In this document: piece after piece, positions 9,135 through 32,450 of the stretch | Numbering within the stretch: the stretch's first letter is position 1 | How the letters are laid out: each line of letters starts with the position of its first letter | From: Entomortierella parvispora E1425 | Lineage: Eukaryota > Fungi > Mortierellomycota | Reading direction: 5' to 3' | Assembly: GCA_020891255.1 (NCBI GenBank) | Contig: BQFW01000002.1 | Coordinates: 2,976,001 to 3,040,000, forward strand | DNA: 64,000 nucleotides | Translations under genes and position numbers: made by a program | Notes under the pieces: model-generated | Seen by the model: the letters and a program-made list of their open reading frames with translations, nothing else | Databases searched by the model: none | What the model was told of the DNA's origin: nothing

Positions 9135-11588
9135 ATGGGCAACCAGCTCACAAAGCAGCGGCCCAGCCACAAAGGACAGCGTAACTCGGCCACACTCGAG
9201 TCTTCATCTGTCGCGCAGTCGTCCTCTCAAAGCCATGCCACGCCATCGCCGCCTCGCAATGGAACCGCTACCAACAATGTCCTCAGTAATCAGCACAGCA
9301 CCGGTGCGACCTCCAAAGGCAGTAAACCCCCCCTCACCAACGGAGCGAACGGCCACAGCAGTTACAACACGTACAGCAACAATAATAGCAACAACAACAG
9401 CAACGTCAGCAACGTCAGCAACGGGCATGGAAACTCGACAAGGAGTTCTCAAGAGCAAAGCAGACGGGGGTATACGCAGGCGCCTGGCCTCCCTCCGGGC
9501 ACGCTGCCCGGTGCGTCGTCAGCGAGTGAAACAAAGCCCGGCGCTGCCAGGAGCAGTACCACAGGTCAGCGTGACCGCACGGGAGCAGAGGTGGCTGCAG
9601 GATCAGGATCTGCCAAGAAAGGGTCGTCTTTGGCATCTTCGGTGCCAGCAGGTTTAGGCCCAGGCTCTCTTGCTGCAAACGAGGCGCGCCACTCTCTCGA
9701 CAAGATCGCACACGGAACCAATGGCGGCCAGTCCGGCCTGAAGAGCAACCTTCCGACTCAACCTCCCCTGCAACAGCAGCAACAACAATTCTCCTCCTCA
9801 CAACCGAATGGCCAGCACTTGTACAATAACCAAGGCAACGGCAAAGATACCCAGCCACAATACCTGGCAACCTCACAACCATCCCAGCACCAGCAACGTA
9901 AGCAACCGTCGCCACCCCCTCTGGCGTCCTCCGTGCCAAGCATTCCTTTTGCAGTATCGACCCCAGGGAACCCCATCCTGGTTCGCAAGCACGGTCTCGC
10001 CCCTCTCACCATTCCACCCTCAAACTCGTCTTCGCACCCCAACAACCGGTCACCGCCACCGCCACTCTCGCCAAGATCGGCAGCTCAGACCAAAGCGGAT
10101 CTGTCTCCGACGTCTCGCTTACCTTTTATGGGACCCACTTCTGCAACTGACAAGGGCGGGAAGCACATGGACGTGGACGATATGATCTCGCGACTACTGG
10201 ATGCCGGATATTCTGGAAAAGTCTCCAAGAGCATCTGTCTCAAAAACAGCGAGATTCTCTTTATTTGCCAGATGGCCCGAGAGGTGTTTTTGTCGCAACC
10301 AACCTTGATAGAATTAAATGCGCCGGTCAAGATTGTGGGCGACATCCATGGACAGTACACGGATCTTCTTCGTCTGTTCGAGATGTGTGGATTTCCGCCC
10401 TCCGCCAATTTCTTGTTCTTGGGTGACTACGTGGATCGGGGTCGGATGAGTCTCGAGACCATCTTGCTGTTGCTCTGCTACAAGATCAAGTACCCAGAAA
10501 ACTTTTTCTTGCTGCGAGGTAACCATGAGTGCGCTAACGTAACCAAAGGTAAAAGCTCGAAATGATCATTTTTCCTTTACATAATTGTTGCGAAGGATAC
10601 AGGACAACAATGGCAATGAACACAGCTGGACAGAAGGGCGATAGAGGCTGAATATGCAAAGCTCAACGGTAGTGCCATCGATCGACTGCTTTCTTTGCAA
10701 TATCGCCTGATCTGATCCGCTATATTCAGTTCTGAGCAATTTCTGGACAGAGAGCAAGTAATGAACTGACAACAACAAGAGTCGCACGAAAGGTGTGGCA
10801 GAACCACTCAGCGTCTCAGGAATCGAAAATGGGTGACCGGGACCTTTGCCAGGGACAGGCATTAGCTGAGCAGAGAACAGACGATCCAGGAATGATGGCC
10901 GACTCTTTTTTTTTCTTCGTTTCAAACAGCTGTCGTCGTCCAGTTTTCGGGACTTTTTTTTTCTCCTTCCTGATTTTAACATTTTTTTTGTGCTCTCTCC
11001 TTAGTCTACGGATTCTATGACGAATGCAAACGGAGAGCGAGTATCAAGATGTGGAAATCTTTTGTGGACGTGTTCAATTGCCTGCCGCTCGCTGCAGTCG
11101 TCGCCAACAAGATCTTTTGCGTCCATGGAGGATTGTCACCGAGTCTAGGAACAATGGATGACATTCGCGCGATACGTCGACCAACTGATGTCCCAGACTA
11201 CGGCCTCCTGAATGACTTGCTCTGGTCGGACCCATCGGATACAGCACTGGATTGGGAAGACAACGAACGTGGCGTATCTTATTGTTTTGGCAGGAGCATC
11301 ATTCAGACTTTTTTGAACAAACACGACTTTGACCTTGTCTGTCGAGCACACATGGTCGTTGAGGATGGATACGAGTTCTTCAATGACCGAACCTTGGTCA
11401 CTGTCTTTTCTGCTCCAAACTACTGTGGCGAGTTTGACAACTTTGGGGCGGTCATGAGTGTAAACGAGGACTTGCTCTGCAGTTTTGAACTGTTGAAACC
11501 GATTGATCAAGCGACTGCGAGGGCGCAGATGCAGAGTCTGGCTGCGTCATCTGGGGGGTGGAGAGTCAACAAGCAGCGATTAAGGTAA
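9135..11588 (+). CDS. PPZ1: Ser/Thr protein phosphatase, PPZ-type (PP1 family) with long disordered N-terminus
   Basis: ATG 9135 gives MGNQLTK (myristoylation-type start), then a Q/S/N-rich region. PPP motifs [38 protein letters not shown]. Intron 10549-11004 restores [16 protein letters not shown] short extra 3' exon (~11687-11780) is possible. Confidence 0.93.
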
Positions 11589-12659
11589 ATGAAAGGCCTG
11601 GCTATCTCCCAGAGTCTGAACCAAGATACCAGTATACCATCAAGAGCCGTGTTACTGACCGCCCTTTTCTTTTGATAATTCCTTAGCATACCGGACAGCA
11701 ACTCTTTGTATGCATCGTCGCTCAGCACTACTGTTCAAGGATAGAGCCGATCGAGGTCCCTCACCTACGCCAGCCTATTAATCTTTTTCGTATAATAATA
11801 ATAATTGTGTTGCTGGTGGCGACTCGCGACCTGATGCCAGGCAACCTTGTACAATAGAACGAGATTGCTGAGGTGTGGTGTTGCCTTGCCATGTATTTGT
11901 TTTTCTATCCGCTTGCACTTGCTCCAATGGCATGATCTACGGGTGAGCTGGTTGACCGGTTACGACTGGGCATACGTATTTGTTCCTTTGTGATTGTATG
12001 TCGTCCCTTAACATACTCGTGGACAAAGTTGCGTCAGGTTTTGAATAAAGACATGTTCTTTTGCACTTCTTGTTTGACTCCTTTTTCAAAGAACTAATTG
12101 GAGGTAGTCCAAAAGGGTGGCGCCTCTCTGCAGCACGAGTAAAGGGGGCACATCTAGAACAAAGAAACCACACAGGGCGCACCAACAGGGCAAAGGAGGA
12201 CTTCCACCAACGGATTGCGGCTTCGCCAAGGAAACACAAACAAAACATAGACATTATCTCCTCTGTCTAGCTCGGTTTTTTTTCCCGATGAGGATCAGGC
12301 CCTCACGAGGACGACACAACGCGACAATGGGACGAGCGGGCAAACAGACACGCAAATTCCACACTCAGTCAGCACAACACCATGATGCGCGTGTTGGGCC
12401 CAAGCGCCTGTAACACGACCGCTTCCCGATCTTGAGGTGCGTTGGCTTTGACAAGAAACTCATGTGGCTGTATTTCAGACACAACCCGCCCTGTCTGATC
12501 TGCAAACAACAAAGTCGTGGACAATCGAGTACGTATATAACCGGGGACTCGATCCTTCCCCCCTCCTCTATTCGCTTCACTCATCTTTCTCACAGTTCCA
12601 GCAGCCCCACCCTGTTTCAATTGCCTTCACCTCCACGTCGCCCACGTTCTCTTTTTTCC

Positions 12660-14491
12660 ATGAACTCCAAGCAGCTTAACGTTTCGCAGCCTGTCCCTCA
12701 AAATCCAGATGTTACTATCTGCTTGCCAATGCTCGAGATGGCATGTAATAGTGCACCGCAGTATGGGTATGATCCAGATGTCACTATGGCCGAACAAAAC
12801 CCTTTTTCAAGCCCGTTTCTGGAAAACACTGCGGCCCCAGAGAGTTTTCGCTTTGAGGAGACACTCTTCACGGAACTGTGCTTCTTGCCGTCGAGCTTCA
12901 TGCGGTCTGGCTACCGGGATTCCCCAAGACAGCTCCAATCATCTGGGCCTGCACTCTTTTTTTGCGATGCTCTGATGCCCACGGCCGACCGGGTTGGTCA
13001 ACTCTTTCAACTTCCCAACGGTGGGAGCAGTTATTTTTCCTCATCCCTTGGAGCCAACAAAGAGCAAACTGTGCCATTTCCAAGATACACGTCTCCACCA
13101 TTAGCTTCGATGACAGGGCTTGCCTCTTCCTTGACGCAGCCGACACCCCAGATCGCACGTGCAGCGCAGAAGTCGCTCCGGATCTTTGCTCCTAGCTCTT
13201 CCTCCATATTGTCGTCGCACCTTGCTTCACCTTTGCCATCCCCCCAGCAATTTTCACCACAGCCACCTCACCAAGACCGCCAAGATCCAAGTTTCTATAA
13301 CGTTCTTGCAGCCCATGGTTATACTGAGCCCAACTATGTCTCTCCATGCGATACTTCCATGATGCATCATCAAACCGTCCCCGAGATGCTTTCACCAGCC
13401 CCTGACCAAGGGGTTTTTGAAATGACTTTGGAGGAGCACAGTGGTCATCCTGAGAGCCGCTACACAAACTCCACCCTTGGCCATCAGTCGAGCACCCTCC
13501 CCAGTCTCTGTGGCTACCAAGGACCGCTCCTTTCCTTTGAAAGAATCCAAACAGCTCCTTTGGCCACAAGTCTCTCTCCCGTGTCTCCCTCTTCGTCGTC
13601 TAGAATTTCTACTATCACAGCGACAGGACACAATATGGGAGGGCTCTTTCCACCTATTGCCATGTCTATCGGCAATCATCGAAGGGCCATTGAGCCCACG
13701 GACCAAGTCCTGTCTTCATCCTGGACTTCGGCCTCTTCCATTTCATCTCCTTCAGTCTCACCCATCATCACCTCCAACTGCACCATCCCAGCACAGCCTT
13801 CGCCTCTTAAACGACATTTCAAATCTTTGGAATCAGATTCAGAGTGTGATGAGCTAAAGGGTATCGACGATGACGATGCAGAAGGTGAAGCCATGAGGAT
13901 TGCTGCTGATAGCTCGAAGCGGAAGCGAAATCGCAAGCCTGTGGTGAAAACCAAGCCCAAGAACAAGGCCCCCGTTGTCAAGCTCAAGGTAACTTTTAGT
14001 TTTGTTCTTTTGTTGAAGAGAGGAATGAGAGCAGGAGGAGTGAAATAGAGAAGTGAGATGGAGGTTTGGAATGTCCTTGTCTTCTTGTCTAACTTTGTGC
14101 TTTGCGTTTGCTCTCCCATTGTATCCGCTTGATTTAGTGCTCTTATCCGGGTTGCATCATTACCTGTGCAAGTCAACCGTCGTTGGCCAGGCATGCAGAG
14201 GCCCACAAGTGGCGTGGGTTGTACGCTCCGGTGCGCTGTGAGGCTTGTCAGAGCGCACTCTCGAATGAGTTCTCGGTCCAGCGTCATATCCTGCGATCCC
14301 GACCGTCCTCGCTCTGTCGCCAGTTGAGAGTGTACAGCATCATGCGATCCGACATTGAGATCGAGTCCACGGTACGGTTCTTTCCAAAACGACCCCATGG
14401 AAAAAAGACGGTTGAGATCGACATTGCTCATGCCATAGAACGGCATCGGGGTCTGTTGAAGGAGCAATACAAAGCGACAGGTCAATGCTAG
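12660..14491 (+). CDS. Zinc-finger transcription factor A (C2H2 + C2HC fingers, long S/P/Q-rich N-terminus)
   Basis: Exon 12660-13988, phase-0 intron 13989-14137, exon 14138-14491. Fingers CSYPGCIITCASQPSLARHAEAH and CEACQSALSNEFSVQRHILRSRPSSLC; basic NLS-like KRKRNRK before the fingers. Confidence 0.82.
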
Positions 14492-14955
14492 GGACGAGTT
14501 GGGGAGTTGGTTGATATTCTTTGGTAGTTTTCTTTTTTTTTTTTTCTTTCATAGAAGTTTTGGTACCATCCATATAGAAAGTTTCTTTGTTGCCTTTTCA
14601 AAATAAAGCATTGCGCATACCCTCCACGGTCATGACAAAGTGCTGTCCAAGAAAGATAGTTTTCGCGGAAGAACACAATCGACCAAAGGGTGAGCACCCA
14701 AATGCATAGGAGAAATAAAGTTGGTGGCGCATCTCATTTCTCTTACGGGGCAACGCTGATTCCCATGCCATCCTGACTGGACAATAGCGTCGTGAAGATG
14801 ACCGCATCCAGTTCCACTCTACAGCGTCGAGAGAAGAACCCTGTAGAACCAGCTATTGTTTGGTGCCGGAAGCAATGGTACTCCTTGGACCCCGTTTGAA
14901 ACGACCGCCCTGACCTGGGTCACTCGACTTTTATCTGCTCTGCATTGCATTGCTT

Positions 14956-14962
14956 TATAAAG
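14956..14962 (+). promoter_or_regulatory. TATA box of the LPMO-like gene
   Basis: TATAAAG 89 nt upstream of ATG 15045. Confidence 0.55.
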
Positions 14963-15044
14963 TCTTCCTTTCGGTGTTGCTTGATCGCATTTACGAACCG
15001 CCTTCTCTACCGCCTAGCCTCTATCCTATATTCTTCTAAACATC

Positions 15045-15701
15045 ATGCGCACAAAAATGTCTTCAAGGGCCCTGAGCTCTGCCCTATTAGCCCTGTGTTT
15101 GACCTCTAGCATTCAACTGGTCTCTGCGCACAGCTGGCTGGACTGCACAAACATGGGTCCCGATGGTTGTGCAGGCTACCCCCTTGGCTACCCTGGCCGA
15201 CAGGATGTAGATATCAATACCAAATACACCTATCTAGTACAAGAACGCCGACCCGATGCGCCTGTGTGTCAGCCAGGTCGGCAAGATATTCCAGGTAGCA
15301 ACCCCTTTCAAGTTGCCTCTGTCACCCCTGGTCAAAATTTACATCTGACGTGGCAGCCGGACGGACATTTGGACGACGCGAACCCCTCAACAATTGAGGT
15401 TCATTGGACCGGAGTGCCGGGCCAGCAGCTTCATGTCCGATCTGAACTTACCCCTGCTACGCTGCTGGGCACGATGGTCTTTGGAACATCGGCCAATTGC
15501 GATCAGCCCTCGGAACCCAATACGTGGTGTCACGGTCACATCACCATCCCGGCCATGACAGCTCCGGGTATTTATCAAGCAGTGTGGTGGTGGAAGTATG
15601 ACCGGAACCCGCACGGGGAGGAATATTCAACTTGTTTCGAGTTGAATGTGCAACCTGCCCCTCCTTTGAAGAAGAGGAGGATCTCAGGACCACAGTTTTA
15701 A
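15045..15701 (+). CDS. Secreted His1 LPMO-like (putative histidine-brace copper) protein, intronless
   Basis: Hydrophobic signal ending VSA followed by H-S-W-L-D-C, so mature residue 1 would be His. Second His in TWQPDGH; C-terminal GIYQAVWWW...EEYSTCFELNV resembles the LPMO W...Y-x-x-C-x-D/E-V strand; six Cys in the mature part. Confidence 0.65.
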   Translation: MRTKMSSRALSSALLALCLTSSIQLVSAHSWLDCTNMGPDGCAGYPLGYPGRQDVDINTKYTYLVQERRPDAPVCQPGRQDIPGSNPFQVASVTPGQNLHLTWQPDGHLDDANPSTIEVHWTGVPGQQLHVRSELTPATLLGTMVFGTSANCDQPSEPNTWCHGHITIPAMTAPGIYQAVWWWKYDRNPHGEEYSTCFELNVQPAPPLKKRRISGPQF

Positions 15702-17078
15702 AAAAAAAATCATAGGAACTCGACGCACTGAATTAAACACTCCATGGCTTTCTGGCCATGTTTGTCAAGTGTAGGTAGTAGTTTACTGTGACGAGTGTTA
15801 TTGGCATGCACGATGTGGCCGTTCAACTTCGTTTTAGTATTACAAGACAGCACCCGATGTATAATCCAACCAAAATTGGAGATTTTTTTCTTCTTTACAT
15901 CACGTCCAAGGAGCCAGGCAATCAGGGGTGTCATGCTTGGTGGAGACAGAGAATAAGAGTCCTCCACTAGCCATATTCAGGCATCGACGGATCTGTTTAG
16001 GACGATCGGAATTGCAGCAACCTCCTTGCCTTAAAATAGTCTCCCAGCCTCTTTCGCAAAGGCCAAAAACAGCACGACCTTTTGTTTCGATTGCCGCGCA
16101 AATGTCATTCCAGAGCAACGGTGAGAGAGCAGGAAACCTTTTTCAAAGAGGAATAAGAGAGAGATCACCGACTCTATGTCTACAGCCCACCTGTGGTGGT
16201 AGCAAGAGTAAACGAATGCTCAGAGTGCCCTACGGCATTAAAAAAAAAAAAAAAGCGAGGATCCAGAGCCCACGATTCACTGCAGTCTCTCGTGGTAAAG
16301 TGAGAGCAATGGCCTGTTGGGGTTCCCCGACCTCCAGTCTCCAAGACCACATAGACACGAAACAATCGAAGAGGGGGGGATTAAACGTAAAGTGCAGTAC
16401 GGGACGCGACTACAATCGTCAGGACAGGGTCTTCCCGGGGCCACTCCTGTCAACAGACCATCAGCGTGATGCCCGATTTCCCGTAGCTTCTTTCGGCGGT
16501 TTTGGGTAATGTCGGCTGCAATACCCCGAAACGGAGAATCGAAACAGAAGGCGCTATATTCGGCGGAATGGACACAACTCTTGCCCATGTCTCGTACCTA
16601 GCCACTTCCGCACAAGATAAGGAACTTGGACCAAAAACAGCTATGGCGAAGGAAAACAAGAGGCCCGGAGGCCAAGTACCTTATTTTCTACCTGTCTGTG
16701 AGCGAGAATAGCTGAGAGAACAGCAATTCACAACCATGTATGGGCCAACTCAGCCAGCAAGTGCACTCGATGGTCATTGTGTTGAAAACACTGGCATCCA
16801 TTTGTTCGACACTTAAATACAGTGACCTGCACTTATCCGTCTATAATCTGTTCGTCGCTCTTTCATTCTTCGTCTTCGATTGTGTCTTTTCAGAATACGA
16901 CTCTTTGTCATCCTACACAACGACACAAAAACACACCGATCCCAACATAACACAAATACAACCCTCGGCCGTCCTGTACGTCAACCATCTGGATCTCTTT
17001 CAACTTCCTTGGTGCTACCTTTGCTGACCAATATTCACTCAACATCCTGTCACCAACTAAAAAAAGATCTCATAACAA

Positions 17079-18860
17079 ATGGACCCCTCCTACTCCATCA
17101 ACACGAATGGGTTCATCTATACGCCGCTGTCAGATGAAGGACATATCACCAGTTCTGGCTCTCCCATCACTTCTTGGCCATCATACGACGGCACCCAGGG
17201 ATATCTTGTTTCCCAGGCAGACTATTCAAACTACAATCGACATTTGCAGTTGCAACAGCACGAATTTAACTTGCAGCACAACGTTGGCTTTACAGTTGTC
17301 CATCCGGACCAAATCGAGCAGGAGCCGCTGTCCTCTTTTGCTTCATCTTCCCTTTGGTCACATATTTCACCTTTGATCCCTCCCACTTCTTCGCCCTTGT
17401 CAATTTCTTCGTCACGACACCCTCTGGACCTCACACCTATTGACACCAAGAATCTCTCTATTTCATCCATGGACCTGTTGCATCCTTCTCCCGAACATCT
17501 TCATGGCGCCAGTACAGACGACTTTGGTTTCAACTCAAACAACCTCACATCTTTTCTCAACATCCAATCCGCTGCAACTTTGAGTCGATCGTCCAGTCCG
17601 ACTTCAAATGGCTGCATCGATCCTGCTGCCCTATTGTTAAAACAAGACCCTTCTCTGATGACTCATGGCACCTCCACAATATCTGCATCCTCCTGCTTTT
17701 CTACTCCCGAGAGCCGTCGTTTATCCTCCTTTTCGATCTCGGGGGGTCTAGAAGAGGATACGACCTTCTCCGACGCGATCTCTGCCTACGAATCGGCACG
17801 GAAAAACTGGACCTCCTCCTCTTCCTCAAATCGAAGCGTTCCATCAACACCTGACCCATCTGAGGGCTGGAATGGTTGCTCTGTTTACGCCCCCGATCTC
17901 ATGCTGGCGGATGGGACATTGCTTCGATTCGATGGTCGATCTCTTGTACCGGCTCTATCAACTTGCTCTCCCATTGATTTTACAGTCACCGATGATTCTT
18001 TTGTTCCCTCTTCAGAGAGGGAAATTGCTTGCCCTCAAGCGATCACCCTGAACCCTGCCAACCTAATGCACTCGAACGCGGATATCTCTCTGATGATGCC
18101 CTCGTACATTCCCTACGCCGAGTTTTCGCAACTGGGCATTGACGTGGCGGGTCAGGGTTCATCCTCATCAATGATGAATCCAACTGATCCTACTCTCCTC
18201 AGTGATTCTCCTCCCCACAATGGACAGCAGATGCCAGTGTATTCTCTTACCTCGACATCGTCCCCTCTCCGTCCAAGTGTATCCTCGACAGACCACCGCC
18301 TAAAGCACAAGAAAACGGCCTCACTACGTAAATCAGCCTTTGAGGATAGAAGGCGCCGTGGCTCGACGGACTCTGCCTACCACTCGTCGTCGTCGTCGTC
18401 CTCCACCACCATGAAGCCTCGTGCCTCCTCGTCCTCCATGTCCAACAGTTTCGACAGCAATAGCAATAGCAATAGCAACAACAGCAGCAGTAGCAACAGA
18501 TACCGCAAGGACGGTGTAGGCGAATTCAAATGTCCTTTTGAAGGATGCGACTACCATTACAACCTTCGCCGCGAATTGAACCGTCATCGAAACGTCCATG
18601 TCTTTGCAGGTCGAGACAAGTACCGGTGTATGAATTGCAACTCTGGACTCTGCCGGTTGGATTCTGTCAAGAGGCACATGGAAGCCAAGGGCAAGAGCGA
18701 GTGTTTGAAACGTGGACTTTATCAAGAGTTCCGAGAGGATGGCGAGTTGGCCCGGGTCCGGCACTGCAAACCGAGTTGGTACGAGGGCGCGGCAGCTGTG
18801 GCGGCGGCAGCAGCAGCAGCCTCAGCTGCCGCTTTGGAAGCGCGTCGTCGTCGAAAATGA
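17079..18860 (+). CDS. Zinc-finger transcription factor B (C2H2 + C2HC fingers), intronless
   Basis: 593-aa ORF with Ser-rich N-terminus; FKCPFEGCDYHYNLRRELNRHRNVH and YRCMNCNSGLCRLDSVKRHMEAKGKSEC; C-terminal poly-Ala and RRRRK. Confidence 0.88.
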   Translation: MDPSYSINTNGFIYTPLSDEGHITSSGSPITSWPSYDGTQGYLVSQADYSNYNRHLQLQQHEFNLQHNVGFTVVHPDQIEQEPLSSFASSSLWSHISPLIPPTSSPLSISSSRHPLDLTPIDTKNLSISSMDLLHPSPEHLHGASTDDFGFNSNNLTSFLNIQSAATLSRSSSPTSNGCIDPAALLLKQDPSLMTHGTSTISASSCFSTPESRRLSSFSISGGLEEDTTFSDAISAYESARKNWTSSSSSNRSVPSTPDPSEGWNGCSVYAPDLMLADGTLLRFDGRSLVPALSTCSPIDFTVTDDSFVPSSEREIACPQAITLNPANLMHSNADISLMMPSYIPYAEFSQLGIDVAGQGSSSSMMNPTDPTLLSDSPPHNGQQMPVYSLTSTSSPLRPSVSSTDHRLKHKKTASLRKSAFEDRRRRGSTDSAYHSSSSSSSTTMKPRASSSSMSNSFDSNSNSNSNNSSSSNRYRKDGVGEFKCPFEGCDYHYNLRRELNRHRNVHVFAGRDKYRCMNCNSGLCRLDSVKRHMEAKGKSECLKRGLYQEFREDGELARVRHCKPSWYEGAAAVAAAAAAASAAALEARRRRK

Positions 18861-20026
18861 TTAGCTACTTTTTTTTTTTTTTACTATCTATCTCCATCCC
18901 TCTTTCTATCCATCGACTCTCATCTCTTTCTCGTCATCTCTTTAGCGAGTTGCACGCGCGCGAACTTGCCACTTGTATATACAAATAGAAGGTTTCCTGT
19001 CTGTCTGCGTTATAAAAAAAACCTCCGAGGTTGCATGAGAAAAGAGTCCGCTGAACAGAAAAGAGATTGAGTTGAAAAAAAAAGAGTAGCTCGCCGTGGC
19101 ACTCGAGGACAAGGATGGCTGGCTCTCTACATGTATTCAGTACTTTGTTTTTTTTCTCTCTTTCTTCTTTCTCTCTCTCTCTCGCGTGCGCTCTCTTCCT
19201 CTTTTCCTCTCCGCCCGCATCTAGTAGTGCATGTACTCTTCAAGTGTCAAGTGAAACGGTTAAACCAAAGAGTTGCGCCATTATTTATCGTTCGTGTATC
19301 CCTTGAATCCTCTTCTTTGTCCTCTCCCTCTCACTCTCTTTTTTCTTGACCACCTTCGTTTTTTGTACTCTCTTTCTTCAGTGGGATCGTCTTTGAGGTA
19401 CGCGTTACAATACAAAAGGGCTGACATATCTCAATTGCCCTCCAAAAGTTCGCGTGAACACAAAGTACCTGTTTGTCCCCGACACTTAAAACAAAAACGC
19501 GCACAAACATTGTTTTTTCCCCTGGATTGTTAGTGCCGTTAGCAAAAACACAGCAAATCTGTTGTACTCCTCCTCGTCTCTTTTCCCTCTGTTCTCTCTC
19601 TCTCGCTCTCTCGCTCTCTCTGTTCTCTCTTACCCTCAGCCCGCGCTCTCTTTGTGCAAACGTGTGTCCGCTCTCCACTCTTTTTTTTCTTTCTCCGAAA
19701 CAAATTCTTCGGGTCTTCTTTTTGAGGTCCAAAGTTCACGGACCTTGCGAGCCTCCTGGATTTTTTTTTTTTTTTGAGGTGAATAACATTCTTCTCAGAA
19801 ACAACAATTGGTCAGAAAAGAGGCACACAAAGTGCGCTGGTTATGCAGGGGTAGGTAGGAGTCTGAGGGGGTGGTGGTGGTGGAAGGTCGGAGTGGTTGC
19901 GGATGGATGCACAATGTGGGCGGCAAGCCTCGTTTTCGGCTGAGACTTTTCAAGCCTTCCAAAGTTTACCCTCGATTCTCATTCCTGCTGCAGAGAGCGT
20001 GGGTGCTCTTGAAGCTCTCTACTTTA

Positions 20027-20103
20027 CTTGCTTTTGCATGCACGTTTCCACACTTGCTCGCCTGCATTGCTCGCTTGCATGGCTTGCTTGCTTGCATGCA
20101 TGT
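20027..20103. repeat. Degenerate (TGCA/TGCT) short-period repeat
   Basis: cttgcttttgcatgcacg...gcttgcatggcttgcttgcttgcatgcatg: dense TGC(A/T) units in intergenic DNA. Confidence 0.6.
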
Positions 20104-23100
20104 TTGCTCTCTCCTTTTCTCCCTCTCTTTTTTTTGTCTCTTTTTTTTCCCTCCATCTTTTTGAGAGATTGGCACCAGACCACGTCTGTATGTCTGTACC
20201 TGTGTTCGCTTGGGGTGTGGTGGTCACAGAAACACATGGTCAACGGGCGTCGACCTTTGGGTTCCACTAATGTTTTCTGACACAACTGACTATTTTGTTT
20301 CCCTCCCTGAACAGCCCGTCCAATATTCTTTAGGTTGCTCAGGGGCAAAGAAAGTAAGAGTACGTTGGGGCAGAGCAGGGTACCAGGGTACTGTAGGAGA
20401 AGGAAATAGAGGAATGGAGGGGAGGCGGAGAGGCCAAGCGCGAAAAAGCTCAATACGAGTGGTGGCCTCTTGGAGGCGCCACATGATGACACAGCACAAA
20501 TATACCCCCCACAACCCCACGCTTTAGTTCAGATGCCTTCAAAGTCATGGCGCCCAAAAAAACGCCATATCGCCGCCAATTGCAGGTGGGGACCAATGGG
20601 TCGCAATCGGGGATCAAGAAGAGCTTTAGAAGGGTCCATGCTCACTCCTCCCCCTTGTTCCTTTTTTTTTCTCTCCGAGCCCGAGAGCCGTTCCACCAAC
20701 ATCAAAAAAAAGAGAGGGAAGAGCAATTGACTTTGTCTTCAAGGCATCTTTTGAAAAAAACATGGCGCGCTCGCTTGCGCGCATCCGAGAGTTTCAACGG
20801 CCAAAATGCGGAGGAGTACAAAGGACAGAAAATGCAGCGGCTTTGATTCGTGTTCACGAGGAATGTTTAAAGGCCGATGTTTCCCTCAAACATCGAGACT
20901 TATAGAGTTTAGGTACGTATCTCTCTTACCCCCGTCGCTCTCCTCTCAAATCCTGGTCCTCCGCGGGCGAACGGGCGAACGGACGGACGTGATGGACGCT
21001 TGGACAGAGCGGTCAACACCACCCCTCTAGCTCAAATTTGCCAAGCAGCGAATCAAAACAGCAGAAACTTAACTATGTTCGGGCCATGTTTTTTTTTGGA
21101 AGACAAGACGGCCCCCAATACAAACAAGAACAAACGACAATCTATCAGGTCCGTTCTCATCTTCAATTGCTAAGAAAACAATAGCACTGTGCTCTATTGA
21201 AAGAGGACAATCGCTTCTATCTAGCTCAGTTAGCTGTCTTTATGTTGCTGCTTGCCGCACATATCTACCCTTTGTTTGTCGGTTGTTTATGTTCTGAGCA
21301 AATACACACAACTAAATCTCGTACGACTGGACCTGATAGCGCGGGCGGGCATGATTTTTTTTTTTGGGTGACAAGGATCTGTTTTCTCGTCAGTATATTC
21401 AAGAAAGAGTTTCAAGATGGAATTGGCTCAAGGTGTGCCGGCGCATGGTTCAATGGAAGAACAAAAAAAAGAGTTCTTCGGAAGACAGAAAAATGGCGCG
21501 TACCTGAAGGGAACCCATCACACAAAGATTTTTTTTTTTGTTTTTGCCGCGTGTGTCAGGTTCAGGTACGAGCAACCACAGCGAGAGCTCTTGCATGCAT
21601 CCTGTTGTCCAAGGGCAATTAAGCCAATTGCGCATCTGACAACGTTCCAATGGGGTGTAAGAAGGAAGAAGACGCTTGAAGATAGGCAACGATAACAAAA
21701 AACCAGTTTCCAAAGGGTGAACAAGCTCCCAAAAACAAAACATTGGCCCATGGGTCCCAGTTTGACTCTCACTGCAAAACGGCAAGCTGTTCAAAGAGAA
21801 CATGCCTTTCGGCTGTGCTCACACTCCACTCGCGACCAAGATTTCTCATCTTTCCCCCCCGCCCTCAACCCTCGGTCCCTCGAGGTCGGCGTCTAGCGAA
21901 ATGACGAATGTCGATTCATGCAATCATCACCCCCTCCGACTTTTCTCCTCCCCCTACCCTCAAGTTACCATCCGCCTTTGGTGGAAATCGCATAAAGGGT
22001 CAATATTTCCCTTCTGGGTTGATGGCGGAAAAAAAAGGTTGCTGTTTAAACGGGAATGAGCTAGGGGGGTGAAGCGAAGAGAGAGAAAAAACATAAACGT
22101 TGAACAACAAAAGAATTTTGTTTTTGTTCGCACAGAGTGCGCAATAGGTTTGCCGTTTCTGCATGAGCAACAAAACCAACTTGCAAACATTCGATAGACA
22201 ACAACAACACAAAATTGCTCTTGCGCTTTGTTGTGAGGTGGTGTCTGTTTTGACTCTTAAGCTGTGCACCGACCAAAAAAATTGAGCAGAATTTTTGAGA
22301 GGAGGGGAAGAGGAAGACTCAAACACTAAATAACACCACAGTTGAGGTACACAGTGCTATGCCGAGGCACGTTCTGTAAATCCATTCAGTCATCGATAGC
22401 TTTGCATGGGCTGCATGGGAGCACAACGGAATGTCATGCTCCCTCTTTTTTTTTTTTCTTTTTTTTTTGCTGCACCAACTTGTATCCTTCCTTAGTGTGC
22501 TCTCAATAAGGACCATTGACCCCTCCTCCTTCTGCCTTTCCCCCCGAGGTCAGTGAGCTTGCTCAGAGCGGAGGTAAAGAAACCCCTACCTTTCTTATTC
22601 CACCAATTGGCCCTGTGCACTCTTTTTTATTTTGCGCGCCAAAAAATTCAGAAATGTGAGAGAGCGTACCAAAATTCACCTAGGTTCGGGGACATTGTTG
22701 CCCTGCCGCCAATGAGTGACGCAGCTGGGCCTTTTTGAAATGTGAACCAAGGAGATTTATTTCCATCTCAACGTATTACCTTCCTTCATGCTGTGTTTGC
22801 GTTTTGCCGTTTTCTCGGTTCACCCCATGGGTCAGGTACAGCAAGGAACGAAAAAGAAGAGGTGACTGAAAAGAATGCGACTGTGCAGACGATTTTTACT
22901 GGCTGGCGCTCGGACATCCGATGAGCAAAGATCAAAGCGCACGAGAAGACCCTGATTGCAGGGGTAGATGGACACACAACGTGAAGAAGGGAAAGGAAGT
23001 CGGAGGGAACAGACAGCAATTGGTTTGTTTGTTTGTATGGGTTTGTGTAACTACACCGGATTTTATATTGGTAGGGTTATTGAATAACCCACTGTAGGGC

Positions 23101-24836
23101 CTGCTGGCCCAAATGGAATGAACCCCCTCGCTGTCTGTCTCCGTCCCCTTTTCGTTACCCTTTCGTCCCTGCCTCCTTAGAAAAGAGCGAGTTAATTTTG
23201 TCGACTGACGCGACGCAGACGCGTTCCTTTCGCGTGGTGAGAGTGGGAGCAGACGATGGTGGGGTGGGAGCAGTGGTAGTTGCGTGGCAAGGAGGACAAT
23301 GGCAGCGTTGAGTGGTGAAGAAAAGGATGAGAAAACAGATAAAAGATGAAGGAAATCAAGTGAAAATTCAAACGAATAGAAATTTGAGCACTCCCATCAA
23401 TAGAGGACCAAGAGTGACACTTTTTGGTGAGGGCGATGGAAGACAAAGGCTTCACCACTGCCACGCATCCACAGTGCCGCAGTTGCAATTGCATTCCACG
23501 AATGGGAAAAAGTGGTTGTTCTTTTCGTAGACATGACGGGACCTTCCATCTTTGTCCGACAATTCTCATCTGTTGATGATCGTTGCAAACAGGGTGGTCC
23601 GCGACCCATGGCCCAACCGAGGAGGACACGGTGGGAGAAAGAAAGGAGAGTTATTTTGAATGCCTCGCCCACCCTTATTGTGCAGTTGAAGAGCAATTGA
23701 ATAAGAGAATGCGTTGTAAAAATCCTAGTTCACATGCCGTCAATCCTGTCTGTACTTTTCCACGGCAATGGTGGACGAGCGAGACGGACACAAGATGCTC
23801 GTGAAATCTCTGCGCCTTGCCCACCATGGTACGAAAAGAGTCATCGTGGTTGCCATCTTGAAACGAAACTGATCGCCCTGCTTTTCCCTCTTTTAGTCTT
23901 GGTCAGTCCTCAAAGATTCAGTGCGAGCCATTGAATGGGGTCACTCGAAGGCTCTCTAGACTTTAAACGTGCGACGTTTACCGTGACTAGAAGAATCGGG
24001 CACAGAATGGACTGAGTAGAACAGGGGCAGTTGAATAGGACTTTTTCGTACTCACTATACTATTTGAAGCCATCTGAGTAAAAGACGGTTTGTTCTGTGC
24101 AAGAGAGCACACGAGGAAAAAACAGTACCTGAGTACCTATGTTGTCCCATAATCTGCATGGACAGCGCACAAAAGCGCTCGAACAACTCTTCCTGGGCAT
24201 CTGTCAACAAAAGGGCAGCACAGTAAACGAAAACGGGCACACAAACATTTTTTCAGTTGTTTTAAGTAGTAGAACAATGGGAGCAAAGCAAAGACCAGGG
24301 CCATGGTCTGATACGGGTCAAAAAAAAAAAAAAAAAAATGCGGCCGAAGGCGAGGACACAGGGGAGCTTTGGCCAACCCTGTGTTTTCCATGCCGCCCTC
24401 TGCACATTGTATAAAGATGCCGACCATCTCTCGTTTTCCTCCAGATTTTTTTCTTCTTTCTTTTCTCTCACTCCCGTTTCTCTTCATCCCTCACTGCACT
24501 CTTCATCCCTCGCAATCGCCCCTCCCTTCACTTTGCTCGCTCACGCCGATAATAATCCTCCGTGTGCTCACCGCAATTGCTTATCACTCATCCTTACATC
24601 TTCCCCTCAACTATCCGTTGTTCCTGACTCTCAACCCAGCACTCGGCTAAGGGGTCACTCACCACACGTTCCAACTATCCTGTCCACTCACCGCTGACAA
24701 CACGGCAATTGAGATTTTTTTTTCTCTTCCCTCGTCACACTTTTGCTTCTTTGATACACACTTTCTGCCCAACTCTTTTTCTCGAGAACTCTGTTTTTCA
24801 CACGAACTGTCGGCCCCGTCTCTCCTTCCCTCGACC

Positions 24837-27041
24837 ATGAACTACCAGATTATCGGCGACGGCTCAATGGCAATGATGATGATGCCAGAAGCCAACTTCC
24901 ACTACAACAACAGCCACAGCGACAGCAACAACAGTGCAAACAACTTTGGTTCAGTTGATACAACTCTGGGCCATGAATTCTTGTCTGGTCTTCCGATGCA
25001 TTACGCTGCGACTTCTGGCAACGACTTCCTGAACGTCCCTAACCTCCGGAAAGTGTCATCCACGAATGCCCTCCGCTCCTCTGCTGCCAATGATGCCGTT
25101 GTCGAATCCATCGCACTAGAGGAGTGGCGGCATAGACCTTCAGTGCACTTTGACGTGAACAGCACCTACAACGTCAGCAACAACAGCAGCAGCAACAACA
25201 ACAACACTGACAGCTCTAGCGGCAGCAGTAACAGTTCCTTGCTCCTTGCACCTTCATTGACGCCAACGCAGTCTACCCCTTCCAACTCGTCATTACCTAT
25301 CTTTGGACAGGGCGAGGCGCCTGCTGTTGAAGGTGCAGTATTGCCAGTAACAGGATCATCACTCCCTACGTCGACGTTGCCCTCTTCTGCCACCAATTCC
25401 TCCCCATCAGAGATGGGCTATGTGATGACAAACCAAAATTATTTGCTCGCACAACAACAACAACAGCAACAATTCTACCATCCTTCTCCACAGCATCTCC
25501 CTCCCCGTCATCATCAGCAGCAGCAAGAAGAGTTGGCCGTCACTTCAAGCCCCTACAGCAGCAACGGTGCGCCCTCCTATGTTCCCCTTTCAGACTTCCA
25601 AGGGGTGGGATCCTGGGTTGGCAGTGCCGCGGACTCGGCGGCATCAATTGCTGCAGCGTTACCAACCTCAGCCTCGCCCTCTGCGCACGTACCAGCAGCA
25701 CCCGTGGTGGCCTCCACGCCCATTGTCGGCTCTCACCTCCATCGCAGCAATAGCGTTATTCAGCTTAGCAGTCAACACCATACCCAGCACAACTATGTGT
25801 ACCCTGCAAGACCTTCCCAGCGCAAGAGCCGTTCCTACCAACCCCACCCCCAGTATCAATACCAGCCTCATCCACACCATCAGCCCTTCCCCCAGCCCCA
25901 TCCTCATCTTCAGATCATGACTTCGTTCGATTCCAGCCTTATGTATCCCTCGCCTCAAGTCAGTGAGCAAGGCCAGTTCTGCCACCCAGCCCAACACTAC
26001 CCTTGGGGTCTGAACGCCGCTGGTCTGTCCAACACCTCGCCGGTTGACAGCTGTTTCTCCTCGGGTTCTTCCACGCCCTCGTCTGCGGGTTCGTCCATGT
26101 CGCCTTCCCTGTCGTACTCTCCTACCGAGCTGAGTGGGACCGTGTCCCGCGAGTCGTCCCGAGCAACCTCGCCCTCGAATCTCTACGAGGCTTACTTGGT
26201 CGAGCGCCGACTCCGTCGCGTTGGGGATGGGAGCGAGCCTGTGGGACCTTCTAGCTTGATCATTCGTTCTAGAAAGTCCTCGACTTCCTCGACCTCCTCG
26301 AGCCTGTCCCAGAGGCGGATGTCTACCTTGCGCGAGACAACCAACGCGACGCCCAAGGTGATTACCGCGGCCACGGCGGCAGCAGTGACTGGCACGACCT
26401 CTGTTACCACGTCGGCGGCGTCCCCCACCGCGTCCTCGCCAAAGTCCACGACCACCGCTGCCACCACGACCACGTCGCCTACGCACCAATGCCCCACCTG
26501 TGGCTTGTGCTTTGCAGGTCCCGCGGTGCTGGTCCGCCATATCGAGTCCATTCATGACAAGTTGCTTTGGAACTGTGTGGGTTGCAAGTCCAACTTGTCT
26601 CGACGCGATGCGGTGACGCGCCACATCAATCTGTCGCCCATGGACTCTATCTGCCGTCAGGTCGGAACGATTGGTCAACTCAAGATGATCCATGGGACTG
26701 AGATCCAGTACGAGATCTCGCCTTACCGGGCCAAGCCTCTGGATGAGGTCATGAGCCGAATGGGCAAGAAGGCTCCTTCCTCGAACGGAGCATCGACGGC
26801 CTCCGCTGCCTCGGCTACCTTCCGCAGGAGGGAGTCGAGCGCGAGCACAGGGCACGGAGGTAGCTCCCAGTTGGGCTCGATCTCCCTTCAAGACCAATTG
26901 GACGGCGAGCAATCTTCAACGTTTGAAGAGGCCCTTAGGATGGCGGCGACCGGGTCCCCGGCCATCAAGAGGGAGGATCTGCAGGGACAGCGTCGCCGTC
27001 GGGCGTCATTCCCTTCCCTGGCAGTTCGTCGTAGAAAGTGA
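24837..27041 (+). CDS. Zinc-finger transcription factor C (C2H2 + C2HC fingers), intronless
   Basis: 734-aa ORF with N/S/Q/H-rich N-terminus; HQCPTCGLCFAGPAVLVRHIESIH and WNCVGCKSNLSRRDAVTRHINLSPMDSIC; basic C-terminus RRRK. Confidence 0.88.
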   Translation: MNYQIIGDGSMAMMMMPEANFHYNNSHSDSNNSANNFGSVDTTLGHEFLSGLPMHYAATSGNDFLNVPNLRKVSSTNALRSSAANDAVVESIALEEWRHRPSVHFDVNSTYNVSNNSSSNNNNTDSSSGSSNSSLLLAPSLTPTQSTPSNSSLPIFGQGEAPAVEGAVLPVTGSSLPTSTLPSSATNSSPSEMGYVMTNQNYLLAQQQQQQQFYHPSPQHLPPRHHQQQQEELAVTSSPYSSNGAPSYVPLSDFQGVGSWVGSAADSAASIAAALPTSASPSAHVPAAPVVASTPIVGSHLHRSNSVIQLSSQHHTQHNYVYPARPSQRKSRSYQPHPQYQYQPHPHHQPFPQPHPHLQIMTSFDSSLMYPSPQVSEQGQFCHPAQHYPWGLNAAGLSNTSPVDSCFSSGSSTPSSAGSSMSPSLSYSPTELSGTVSRESSRATSPSNLYEAYLVERRLRRVGDGSEPVGPSSLIIRSRKSSTSSTSSSLSQRRMSTLRETTNATPKVITAATAAAVTGTTSVTTSAASPTASSPKSTTTAATTTTSPTHQCPTCGLCFAGPAVLVRHIESIHDKLLWNCVGCKSNLSRRDAVTRHINLSPMDSICRQVGTIGQLKMIHGTEIQYEISPYRAKPLDEVMSRMGKKAPSSNGASTASAASATFRRRESSASTGHGGSSQLGSISLQDQLDGEQSSTFEEALRMAATGSPAIKREDLQGQRRRRASFPSLAVRRRK

Positions 27042-28169
27042 TTTTTATTACATATCGTTTTTTCTTTTCTGTTTAGTTTTTCTCTTTCATCAAAAAGCAT
27101 CTATACCCTCTTGTGTATCCTTTTCTGTCTCTTTTTCCATTTTTTTTTCTTTCTTGCTTGTCTTTTTTTTCTCCCTCTCCCATCTATACGCTCTATCCTA
27201 TCGTCCTCCATTTTTGCATCAATACCTTCATCCGAAAAAGAAAAAAGAAAAAAAAAAGAAAAAAGTTTCTCAAAAAAGCTTCAAAAGAATGTATTACAAT
27301 AGCCCCCAATGTCTGCAATAAAAATTATGTCTCCCAAAACGAACTCCCCCATTGAAGTCAACTCTGTTTTCTTTTCTGTGCCTGCAGGTCCGCCGGATGA
27401 ATGTTTATTCGATTCTATGCGAGGACGATCACAGTCGCCTTCTTCAAAGAGCTGAGAGAGCACTCACAACAAAAAAGTTCGATATGGTTTGAGTTTTCGC
27501 TTGTTTTTTTGTCAGCTCTTTTGAGCCCTCTCTGTCCTTTGGAGCATTCCATGCTTCAGGCCCAATGATGATCGCTGCATTTTAAACGTAAATTTCCTTA
27601 GAGAGAAAAAAAAAAGGGGATGGCCATGGCCCCAACCCCCCCTATTTTGCGAGCCCACTTTTCGATTCACCCCCAATTGCCCAAACGCCGAAAAAAAATC
27701 GCCGACTGATATCTTCAACGCGGCCTGAAAGTGAGCGGAGGGAATTTTCAAAGTTTTCCCTCACGTCGATTGTCGTGACCCATGAAATCCGGCTAGGATA
27801 CTCTATATTCAAAAGGCAAAAGGAGATGTCGGAGGGTTCGGGGGGCCGGGCTGAACTGCGCGAACGCGAACGTACCCGCCTTCTCGAAGTCAAGCGCAGA
27901 AGTCGCTCAATAGGTCTGAGACTCGAATGGACAATGCTGTCGAGTGGTCCTTCAACTCGACTTGCCAATCCTGTCAGTGAATGTTCCACATTCAGTTTGC
28001 CTGTGGTCATGCCCTCCAGAAAGTCCAATGTCATGATGCCGATTCGTGGGTTGCAAATGTAGAGAGGAAGGACTTGACCAGTGCCTGGTGGTCGACTCAA
28101 GCATTGCGCCACCAATGCCTCAGGTCACGTGAAAAAAAGATACAAACCGAAAAAAACCGTTAAATGGGT

Positions 28170-28431
28170 GGAGGACTGTGTGTAGTGTAGTGGGAATTCA
28201 ATCGCCTGCGAAGCTACACGCCCGGGTTCAAATCCGAGCTCGGGCAGAGACTTCACTCAACTGCAGTGGTACACACTAGTCTCTCCTCGTATCAGTGTGG
28301 CCTTGAGGGAGAGCTGTGTCGTGCTACGCGTCCATCTCTGTGAAAGCAGAGCAAACGTGGTACGCGCTGAAGGGCGAATACTAGTCACCGTTGAGGGGTG
28401 GCTAGGTTTCTTGCTCCAGGACCCAATTTTT
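28170..28431 (+). ncRNA. Structured Pol III-type RNA, best guess SRP RNA (7SL)
   Basis: A-box TAGTGTAGTGG 28183-28193, B-box GGTTCAAATCC 28225-28235 and T5 run 28427-28431. Nested long-range pairings form a rod (28224-29/28419-24, 28242-51/28406-16, 28256-61/28390-95, 28275-80/28380-85, 28292-99/28363-70) capped by a UGAG-loop and a GAAA-tetraloop hairpin. Folded by eye only. Confidence 0.55.
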
Positions 28432-29037
28432 CTCCGTCTTTTGTTGTTGTTGTTCACAATCCTGGATCCCAGATTCTCGGCAGAAAAACTCTCAGATCAA
28501 CGTGAGCCAAATTTTTGGTGGCGCTTTTTTTTTTTGTCCGGGCTCAATGTGCAATTCTGCTCTGTTCAATGTAAAGTGCATTCCGATGAGAACGCAGTGT
28601 TGGTTGCTCGCGCGTCCGGTTTTTTATGTTTCCTGAGGAAGGGGGAACAAGGATGGGGAATGTGTGGAGATTACATGTCGAAAATGTCGAGGAATGGCGA
28701 AAGAAGCAATGAATAGCGCGACAGCAAGAAGGCAGATAAGTGGATGGGTGTCAGTCTGCTTCCTGGTCGGGCCCCTAAGTTGGCTCACCACCGGGCACCT
28801 TTGTACCTGGGCACCTTGGACACAACTGGATATGAATTACACATGTCGCGAAGAGTTGAACCACGGGGACAAGGTCGACAGTGCTTGGGAGGTGCTTGTG
28901 AATGAACCTGAGGATGAAAACGTTCAGCACCGCCACACGCGCCGCTCCCTCGTTTTTTTATCAGCTTCATTTTTTCCTTCCTTGTCTTTTATCTCCCTTC
29001 GCCATCTTTCACCTCTCTATCCACGCCCTTGCCAAAG

Positions 29038-30284
29038 ATGACAGTATTTTCTCTTGCTCCCGATGCATCTATGACCACCCATGCATCCATTAGGTCAGAT
29101 GCCGCTTGCTTTCATGTTCTCCAAGCACTTCAGAGTCATGTCCTTTTTTTGTCGGACCGAGGTTACATTCAAAGGGATTCGCTCAATACGTGAGTATCGT
29201 GTGTCTTTTTCTCGCATCCCTCTTTGTGTCCTTCATTTCGTCCCCTCTAACACATGGCTTCTGTGTAGAATCTTGACCGAGCTCCACAAGCTAGATCCGC
29301 AATCCCCGTCTCCTTCTCGACCCAGGGATCCTCAAGGGATAGACTTGTCCACAGAAAACAGAGGTTCGAATTCGACGCAACCTGAACACGATTCAACATT
29401 AAGTTTTCACGGAAGAAGTAATAGCAGAGATGAGGTCTTGATAGAAGAAGGCTCATGGCTTCAGAGAGAGGATGACCATCATGAAAGCTCGAATTCAACC
29501 AGCTCTCAATCCGTCGCTCTTGAGATCCTGGACGTCGGCTCTGATCGGGGATCGTCCACACCAGCTCCTTCCTCAGGTACAAATATGACATGGGATCAAA
29601 GTCAGCATCAAGACCAAGTCCCAATACCTCGTCCGTCCTATGTTGAGCCTCTGACACATCAATCCCCCACCATAATTCATATCGAATCCGACGAGCCAGT
29701 TCCAGCCGTTGCACCCCCTTCATACGATGATGTTCATTCCCTTCCAGAACAACAGCAAATGTTCGAACAGCCGCACAGGCAAGTTCAAGAAGTTCAGATG
29801 CAGCTACAACAACAGCAGGAGGTAGTCCTTCGACGACAACAACAACTACAAGTCCAGCAAGAGCAACTGCAAAAGCAGCTACAGCGACAACTTCGGCAAA
29901 ATTATGTAGTTTCGTCGAATCCTTGTCAGCAGCAATCAATTGCCTCAAGTTCATCCAACCCCAATCTCAAAGAGGTCGAGGTTATGTGGCAGGCTCAAGC
30001 TATGTATGATTTTCTTGGGGATGACTTGGGCGATTTGCAATTCAAAAAAGGAGACATAATCGATGTCATCAAAGTGGGTGAGTTACCTCCTCTTCATCAA
30101 ATATTGTCTGCTTTGAACTTTTTAAGGTGGGGGAGTGAGGATCCTGGGGAAGTGGAGTTGGCGATCTTTTTGATTTATTATTTTCTTCCACTCAAAACTT
30201 CCTGTAGTGAACGACGATTGGTGGCAAGGCGTCTTGAAAGAAGAGGCTGGCATTTTCCCCACAGCTTATGTCAGGAAGTTGTAA
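29038..30284 (+). CDS. LSB1/PIN3-like SH3-domain protein with Gln-rich middle
   Basis: Three exons. N-terminal helix HVLQALQSHVLFLSDRGYIQRDSLNTILTEL resembles the Lsb1/Pin3 N-terminus; poly-Q stretch; SH3 AQAMYDFLGDDLGDLQFKKGDIIDVIKV-VNDDWWQGVLKEEAGIFPTAYVRKL* (last exon from ~30208). Confidence 0.82.
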
Positions 30285-32211: not shown

Positions 32212-32450
32212 CAGGAACGAGATTAATGCAAAGGGTAAGATGGGAAGATGCGTGACTTGAACTTCTTTTTTACTTTTGAACGCGCGTTCATGTAACTTCA
32301 CTGCTGATGCATGTCATGCCAATTCACTCTGCACTGTTCACGCCAGCCTGCACACCTCCGCCCACGTTGCCAGTCTTTGTAGACCATCCAGACTAAGACT
32401 GCATAAAAAATATATTTGAATCCACTCGAAACCTCCTAAACTACGTTCAC

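Follow-up and report, generated by a model that had tools for sequence, protein, structure and literature searches.

A linked trio of paralogous C2H2 zinc-finger genes in Entomortierella parvispora, probably an ancient tandem array present in two copies in Mortierellaceae

How do three zinc-finger genes that resemble each other only in their fingers come to lie side by side in a fungal genome, and do they still form a family? The question is raised by a stretch of 64,000 nucleotides of Entomortierella parvispora E1425 (contig 2, BQFW01000002.1, positions 2,976,001 to 3,040,000 of the forward strand, assembly GCA_020891255.1), hereafter the window, to which all coordinates below refer unless another contig is named. 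A preliminary description made from the letters alone had placed three + strand genes at 12660, 17079 and 24837 and regarded them as a retained array of transcription factors of a lineage-specific family. Reading of the open reading frame (ORF) list and of the sequence confirms three + strand zinc-finger genes at these positions, termed here g1, g2 and g3. In all likelihood they are an ancient tandem array of three paralogous transcription factor genes belonging to a C2H2 subfamily found only in Mortierellaceae, which was duplicated as a block and is still linked.

The g1 gene is composed of exon 1 (12660..13988, 443 codons, defined by its ORF and the splice donor), which encodes a disordered low-complexity N-terminal region, an intron of 149 nt in phase 0 (13989..14137, GTAACT...TAG) directly preceding the first Cys of finger 1, and exon 2 (14138..14491, 117 codons and a stop), which encodes the whole domain, namely a C2H2 finger, a C2HC finger and a structured tail. 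The open frame of the g1 orthologues begins at the same Cys. The total of 560 residues equals that of the public model P0200, a hypothetical protein of E. parvispora that is 100% identical to g1 across the domain; P0200 served as the whole-protein g1 and the two exons were used separately in searches. The g2 gene (17079..18860) is a single ORF of 593 residues, as is its public model P0249, with the DNA-binding domain encoded at 18525-18800 and a C-terminus that is alanine-rich and then basic. The g3 gene (24837..27041) is likewise a single ORF, of 734 residues (public model P0001, 734 residues), with the domain at 26484-26801 and a basic C-terminus. Short conserved motifs stand in the long N-terminal regions. 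Exon 1 of g1 displays 'LSP..DQG' at residues 239-252 and 'PSPLK' at residues 378-386 (36 orthologues), and a basic stretch, RKRNRK, lies immediately N-terminal of the fingers. In g3 the conserved Ser-rich motifs comprise a Ser/Thr-Pro-rich block at residues 401-416 and a second motif at residues 439-449, followed by a conserved basic/Ser block at residues 474-501 (nucleotides 26256-26339), LIIRSRKSSTSS...QRRMSTLRE, which looks like a cluster of basophilic-kinase sites.

The domain common to g1, g2 and g3 comprises ~95 residues near the C-terminal end of each protein, and BLASTP among the three proteins matches the finger region only, at 31-40% identity, in agreement with the earlier observation that nothing outside the fingers is similar. 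In the alignment of the three the finger pair reads C-x2/4-C-x12-H-x3/4-H, a linker and then the second finger, for which the consensus proposed previously, C-x2-C-x-S-x-L-[SC]-[RN]-x-[DF]-[SA]-V-x-R-H-x8/9-C, was recovered unchanged. Finger 1 follows the classical C2H2 pattern in all three proteins, with C-x4-C-x12-H-x3-H in g1 and g2 and C-x2-C-x12-H-x4-H in g3. Finger 2 has no second His and departs there from the classical four-ligand arrangement; a Cys located 8 (g2) or 9 (g1 and g3) residues after the first His is invariant in 149/149 sequences. The linkers are DKLLWN (6 residues), VFAGKDKYR (9) and KWRGLYAPVR (10). The proteins thus carry two fingers only and differ from Krueppel/KRAB-like arrays, with their TGEKP-type seven-residue linkers and at least three fingers. 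A profile of the domain matched Zif268, KLF4, WT1 and CTCF over positions 1-51 with E values of 1e-10 to 1e-13, and with a designed six-finger protein included the matches to solved tandem C2H2 structures extend from 1e-10 to 1e-21. Pfam zf-C2H2 (PF00096) matches 10 of the 12 aligned members at E <= 1, the best at 5.3e-7. The g3 domain alone, the only domain checked against the PF00096 gathering score of 25.2, reaches 29.0 bits, and the whole-protein scores of g2 (11.7 bits) and g3 (21.8 bits) lie under it. The profile matches to tandem C2H2 proteins together with the Pfam matches therefore assign the proteins to the classical C2H2 class.

The alignment continues for ~35 residues beyond the Cys of finger 2, forming a conserved tail outside any Pfam model. 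In the AlphaFold2 model of the g3 domain (predicted local distance difference test score, pLDDT, 73.6) the tail is folded into a short helix at the Cys, a β-hairpin and a helix, and the model of the g1 domain (pLDDT 83.2, reaching 91-94 over finger 2 and the hairpin) displays the same elements with an extra strand and a long helix. The β-β-α fold is adopted by finger 2 in both models and by finger 1 in the g3 model; finger 1 of the g1 model is predicted as a helix with no strand pair. The best structural matches of both models are tandem C2H2 fingers over ~50-60 residues. Foldseek returned nothing in the PDB at E <= 0.001, the extension of neither model found a structural match in the PDB with Foldseek or VIA-align, where the two fingers only were matched, and a look-alike search of the ESM Atlas returned generic C2H2 clusters only. 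Residues 28-103 of the g1 model (window 14138-14488) align to eight ZnF-UBP domains with Z scores of 3.0-5.0 within the 50 best PDB rows. A likeness of finger 2 and the extension to ZnF-UBP domains was not adopted, Z values of 3-5 being below the noise level of the tool.

The residues that would contact DNA are fixed within each group of orthologues and differ between groups. The helix of finger 2 is fixed at its seven residues, reading RRDAVTR in g3 (67/67), NE[FY]SVQR in g1 (49/49) and RLDSVKR in g2 (33/33). Finger 1 is nearly invariant inside each orthogroup, the g3 helix GPAVL.R being present in 66/67 sequences, and the orthogroups again differ from one another. Finger 2 of g2 and g3 displays the classical pattern Arg(-1), Asp(2) and Arg(6), which reads G-N-G, and finger 2 of g1 combines Asn(-1) with Arg(6). 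All fingers have Arg(6), and the domain is bordered by basic stretches. Most likely, the two fingers of each protein bind a short DNA site.

A second trio, on contig 12, pairs 1:1 with the genes of the window. The g1' gene (contig 12, 1606702-1608368, + strand) has its intron at the same place as g1 and shares with it 60% identity over exon 2, exon 1 being weakly similar (34% over 86 residues). The g2' gene (1608937-1610604, + strand) has widened finger loops, with x15 instead of x12 in finger 1, and is 33% identical to g2 over 97 residues. The g3' gene (1613185-1615482, - strand) is 36% identical to g3 over 632 residues and 85% identical over the domain (82/96 residues). An unrelated F-box gene on the - strand stands between g2' and g3'. 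Because the flanks are also paralogous (window 1917-7917 with contig 12 1564795-1572450, and window 32341-33675 with 1635757-1637225), the trio appears to have been copied as part of a larger segment, which points to a duplicated block that spans at least 70 kb and has been rearranged. The tree of g3 sequences consists of two clades, each with most genera, one including the window gene and the other g3'. Since both clades span most genera, the block duplication would be older than the split of the sampled genera, and the tandem triplication, as far as these comparisons tell, older again. Other genes of the window also have paralogues on contig 12, with amino acid identity up to 75-100% in places, for example a seven-transmembrane receptor-like gene at ~5270-7920. 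Two public models appear to fuse g1' and g2', namely P0143 of this genome (contig 12, 1006 residues), in which the two sequences are joined end to end, and P0208 of Haplosporangium sp. Z 11 (926 residues).

What sets the six genes apart from the other C2H2 genes of this genome is not the Cys-ending second finger by which they had been recognized initially, since more than 10 further C2H2 genes, dispersed in the genome, have a finger of this type (L006, L009, L010, L012-L014, L017, L018, L021, L022, L026 and L027). The terminal fingers of these next-best hits read F-[SA]-R-x-D-[AG]-L-x-R-H-x3-9-C, and it seems that terminal fingers in this fungus generally have a Cys as their last ligand. The six cluster genes are distinguished instead by Val in place of Leu three residues before the His (V-x-R-H), in 5/6 genes by Leu where the aromatic core residue Phe would stand, and by the fixed 8/9-residue spacing with Ser as the second residue before the Cys, together with the structured tail. 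When the 38.9 Mb genome was searched with the profile, exactly six members were returned at E <= 5.6e-26, the next match standing at 5.8e-9, a difference of 17 orders of magnitude. The six members lie in two trios, one inside 14.4 kb and the other inside 8.8 kb, and the probability of random placement giving two such trios is estimated at ~1e-12. In the tree of the domains a single clade unites the g1, g2 (with g2') and g3 sequences to the exclusion of 12 other C2H2-C2HC domains from this genome (Shimodaira-Hasegawa-like approximate likelihood ratio test, SH-aLRT, 90), and each of the three orthogroups is monophyletic (SH-aLRT 91-98). The rows compared included one of 79 residues from a g2'-like ORF of Mortierella alpina. 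The members of the cluster are thus each other's closest paralogues by clade, derived residues and tail, as expected of tandem duplicates.

Relatives were collected with three word-index searches, one per domain, which require shared 5-mers. They returned 153 sequences in three orthogroups (66 for g3, 54 for g1 and 33 for g2), and every named relative is from Mortierellaceae, in the genera Linnemannia, Podila, Mortierella, Dissophora, Lobosporangium, Gamsiella, Modicella, Entomortierella, Haplosporangium, Gryganskiella, Benniella and Actinomortierella. The majority of species carry two g1 and two g3 genes but a single detectable g2, the 33 g2 orthologues being one per species. The lineage-specific family proposed at the outset is therefore upheld among all relatives found, with searches of limited reach beyond Mortierellaceae.

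The linkage is conserved as well. As judged from contigs and locus tags, no fewer than 10 species in at least seven genera keep the trio together, in both paralogous copies. Contigs were read directly for Linnemannia hyalina (L041/L048), Podila verticillata (L042), Mortierella alpina (L043/L046), Linnemannia zychae (L045), Podila epigama (L047), Mortierella polycephala (L049), Benniella sp. (L050) and Gryganskiella cystojenkinii (L044), the window copy being designated type A and the contig-12 copy type B. The type A order of the window recurs in L. hyalina, M. polycephala, Benniella sp. and P. verticillata. In L. hyalina forward g1 and g2 are followed by a forward GHMP kinase gene, 8.3 kb and forward g3; in M. 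polycephala forward g1 and g2 are separated from forward g3 by a reverse thiamine pyrophosphokinase gene; and in Benniella sp. the three forward genes are interrupted only by 6.7 kb before g3. In P. verticillata forward g1 and g2 are followed by a reverse gene of 316 residues and a reverse g3. The fetched stretch of P. epigama ends after forward g1 and g2, and the contig of G. cystojenkinii ends after forward g1 and a forward DUF7492 gene (L044:12813-13565), which follows g1 as in the window and shares 75% amino acid identity with its counterpart there. The type B order g1'-(g2')-g3' is found in E. parvispora, in M. alpina (forward g1', a forward g2'-like ORF that is uncalled and degenerate, reverse g3') and in L. 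zychae (forward g1' and reverse g3', with no g2'). Locus tags of the genes are 1-3 apart in L. exigua, H. gracile, Haplosporangium sp. Z 767, M. hygrophila, L. gamsii, P. humilis and others. The preliminary description would have been refuted, in its own terms, if the three genes fell into different clades of a large, scattered family and their linkage were not conserved in related species; what is found is one clade, six members confined to two trios and linkage kept across genera, and the retained array stands. Its co-orientation was borne out for the window copy, in 4/5 species examined, and fails in the paralogous copy, where g3' is inverted, and for g3 of P. verticillata. A convergent g3 was considered as the ancestral orientation, with the arrangement of the window as the derived one, and dropped, the genes being co-oriented in L. 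hyalina, M. polycephala and Benniella.

The two copies differ in their middle gene and in their surroundings. The g2' gene is fast-evolving or lost in some lineages. The uncalled frame of M. alpina (GCA_015680655.1, L046:11997-13106, 370 codons), located between g1' and g3', encodes a degenerate g2'-type domain in which ligands of finger 1 are missing, whereas finger 2 and a 'GLYAEF' motif persist; the frame is either a gene missed in annotation or a copy in decay. The type B flank, with a P5A-ATPase gene and an MRP-L20-like gene, is conserved in three genera, and the B trio of M. alpina is apparently inverted as a unit relative to the conserved ATPase flank. The type A flanks are far less conserved, as of ~11 flanking genes tested only DUF7492 and a prenyltransferase neighbour were found in the window. 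In G. cystojenkinii (L044:6625-8826) and P. epigama (L047:3848-6511) g1 is immediately preceded by a single-finger C2H2 gene (714-888 residues), and a zf-C2H2 gene at the same position in L. hyalina (L048:1890-4525) is, by position alone, probably its orthologue. In E. parvispora the single-finger gene is found on contig 2 at 2960067-2962274 (- strand), ~14 kb before the start of the window. As a fourth member of the array it was rejected, since the family profile does not recognize it and since it is here 26 kb away from g1 and inverted.

The large non-coding spacers noted previously are present in part. The interval between g2 and g3 (18861..24836, 5,976 bp) is gene-free, contains no ORF longer than 157 residues and displays CT-rich microrepeats only in a tandem-repeat scan. 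The interval between g1 and g2, in contrast, is occupied by an intronless + strand gene for a secreted DUF7492 protein (15045..15701; Pfam PF24320, E 2.7e-11), which is not a member of the family. Comparison of the g2-g3 spacer with seven other loci revealed no conserved coding sequence (tblastn of ORFs of at least 40 residues), and blastn with word sizes of 11 and 7 gave a sole match of 51 nt at 78% identity, of borderline significance (E 4e-4). No Rfam family was found in a scan of 11000-29500. The gene-free regions upstream of g3-type genes measure ~6.0, at least 5.0, 8.3, 6.2, 4.5, at least 6.6, 5.9 and 6.7 kb, and 2.8 kb in M. polycephala, such that 8/9 loci examined fall within 4.5-8.3 kb. 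Fungal regulators that are themselves under heavy control typically have long upstream regions, and the spacer is presumed to be the promoter and regulatory region of g3. On the other side of the array, directly upstream of g1, the window encodes at 8940-11588 a Ser/Thr phosphatase of the PP1/PPZ type in at least two exons, with an N-terminal extension of ~400 residues and matches to STPPase_N and Metallophos.

These results are consistent with the following history. One ancestral gene would have been triplicated in tandem; the copies then diverged fully outside the DNA-binding domain and each would have fixed its own base-contacting residues. The whole trio would subsequently have been copied when a large block, or the whole genome, was duplicated ahead of the split of the sampled Mortierellaceae genera, giving types A and B, and both copies would since have stayed linked, with the middle gene of type B evolving fast or being lost in some lineages. 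The predicted protein plan is a long disordered effector region followed by a C-terminal C2H2 finger, C2HC finger and ~35-residue extension, the β-hairpin and helix of which would pack onto finger 2. The proteins are predicted to bind DNA in a sequence-specific manner, each subfamily with a different short G-containing site. Control of g3 may be exerted by a basophilic kinase, through the conserved RSRKSS / RRMSTL block, and by the long upstream regulatory region.

Three other explanations have to be weighed against this history. That the genes are chance neighbours, unrelated C2H2 genes sharing the common Cys-ending terminal finger of fungi, would draw on the dispersed genes of this genome that end in such a finger, more than 10 in number, but the derived Val, the Leu of five of the six and the structured tail are absent from those genes, the six form one clade 17 orders of magnitude over the next match, and two trios of 1:1 pairs are linked in many species; the probability of this explanation is negligible. 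That the proteins are not DNA-binding transcription factors, finger 2 and the extension binding instead a protein, such as ubiquitin tails, or RNA, is very unlikely. The lack of polar base-contact residues in finger 1 of g3, the non-canonical linkers and the weak alignment of the g1 model to eight ZnF-UBP domains are in its favour, but those Z values lie under the stated noise level and Foldseek gave no significant match, Arg(-1), Asp(2) and Arg(6) are found in finger 2 of g2 and g3 with Arg(6) in all fingers, basic stretches lie beside the domain, and the best sequence matches are DNA-bound tandem fingers.

The remaining explanation concerns the cause of the linkage, which may have been kept either by selection, through shared regulation, or merely by slow rearrangement. 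Under selection the trio would be a co-regulated developmental module held together by shared long-range regulatory DNA, like the Iroquois or Hox clusters of animals, the gene-free region being a shared enhancer landscape. The order is kept in both paralogous copies across genera, the B trio of M. alpina was apparently inverted as a unit, the type A flanks eroded while the trio persists, 8/9 g3-type genes have a gene-free upstream region of 4.5-8.3 kb and all three duplicates were retained in this genome after the block duplication. Against this, unrelated genes are inserted in the window (DUF7492), in L. hyalina (GHMP kinase), in M. polycephala (thiamine pyrophosphokinase) and on contig 12 (F-box), P. 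verticillata and every B copy have g3 in the inverted orientation, L. zychae has lost g2', non-coding conservation is limited to the one borderline 51-nt match, and passive linkage suffices since the microsynteny of the B flank is conserved as well. Maintenance of the trio by selection is thus considered rather unlikely. A bolder proposal is less probable still, namely that the two trios are selectively maintained modules of cross-regulating factors with distinct frozen specificities and a shared landscape that act as a lineage-specific developmental switch, the C2HC finger and hairpin being a new module for binding DNA or a partner. If true, the switch could govern, for example, the formation of sporangiospores, chlamydospores or zygospores or the response to endobacteria, and would be a fungal counterpart of Iroquois/Hox.

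The ancient, block-duplicated array of Mortierellaceae transcription factors remains the preferred reading, and several points weigh against it. The family is restricted to Mortierellaceae only as far as these searches reach: a profile search of 1.84 billion proteins was swamped by proteins with 10-49 fingers, so that only members above 113 bits were visible and distant relatives were little within reach. The support for monophyly is moderate, with 91 columns and with outgroups that are the best 12 hits of the same genome and contribute no tail columns. Finger 2 would be a C2HC variant whose distal Cys, to judge by its invariance, is a predicted zinc ligand. The linkers are not of the TGEKP type. 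In g3 the base-contact positions -1, 2 and 3 of finger 1 are occupied by Gly, Ala and Val, which is unusual for a finger that reads DNA, and because this finger is almost invariant without the usual contacts it may have another role. A literature search found no paper on the family, its locus tags or a genome duplication in Mortierellaceae.

Known systems share parts of this arrangement. Yeast Adr1 (PDB 2ADR) and Drosophila Tramtrack (PDB 2DRP) have only two fingers and flanking accessory residues, as do the cluster proteins, which resemble these and domains of the Zif268/KLF/WT1 type in having two tandem β-β-α fingers, with Arg/Asp/Arg in finger 2 of g2 and g3. In contrast, finger 2 of the cluster proteins ends in a Cys 8-9 residues after the His rather than in a His 3-5 residues after it, the TGEKP linker is absent and an extra extension of ~35 residues is present. 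Fungal factors with a Cys-ending last finger include yeast Swi5/Ace2 (third finger) and Aspergillus NsdC. The cluster proteins share with them a terminal finger C-x2-C-x12-H-x(3-9)-C and a helix R-x-D-x-x-x-R-H, but such Cys-ending genes are dispersed, usually encode two or three canonical fingers first and have Phe and Leu in the core. Vertebrate KRAB-type clusters also consist of tandem-duplicated C2H2 genes side by side; these have many fingers, TGEKP linkers, rapid gain and loss and changing recognition residues, in contrast to the two fingers, fixed copy number and invariant helices found here. In genomic arrangement the array resembles the animal Iroquois (Irx) and Hox/ParaHox clusters, with old tandem paralogues, 1:1 orthology, conserved order, large gene-poor intervals and two paralogous copies; vertebrate IrxA and IrxB are a three-gene cluster in two paralogous copies. 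The Irx and Hox genes, however, encode homeodomains, and shared enhancers and co-expression, demonstrated for them, are hypothetical for the array described here, which has unrelated genes inserted and has one member inverted or lost in some lineages. Conserved clusters of paralogous transcription factor genes are a hallmark of animal development and, to our knowledge, are rarely reported in fungi.

The array is an undescribed lineage-restricted C2H2 subfamily, yet one of C2H2-class factors made by the known processes of tandem and block duplication, and on sequence evidence it stands as a curiosity, if a well-documented one, and not as a new mechanism. Its structured extension could be defined as a new family, and the trio may serve to mark a duplication, of a block or of the whole genome, at the base of Mortierellaceae. 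The genes are also a small, defined set of candidate regulators for knockout in transformable species such as Mortierella alpina and Linnemannia elongata. An early-diverging fungal family here keeps a three-gene array in two ancient copies, with 1:1:1 orthology and invariant contact residues in at least seven genera, which provides a natural test of whether shared regulation can hold the order of genes in a fungus.

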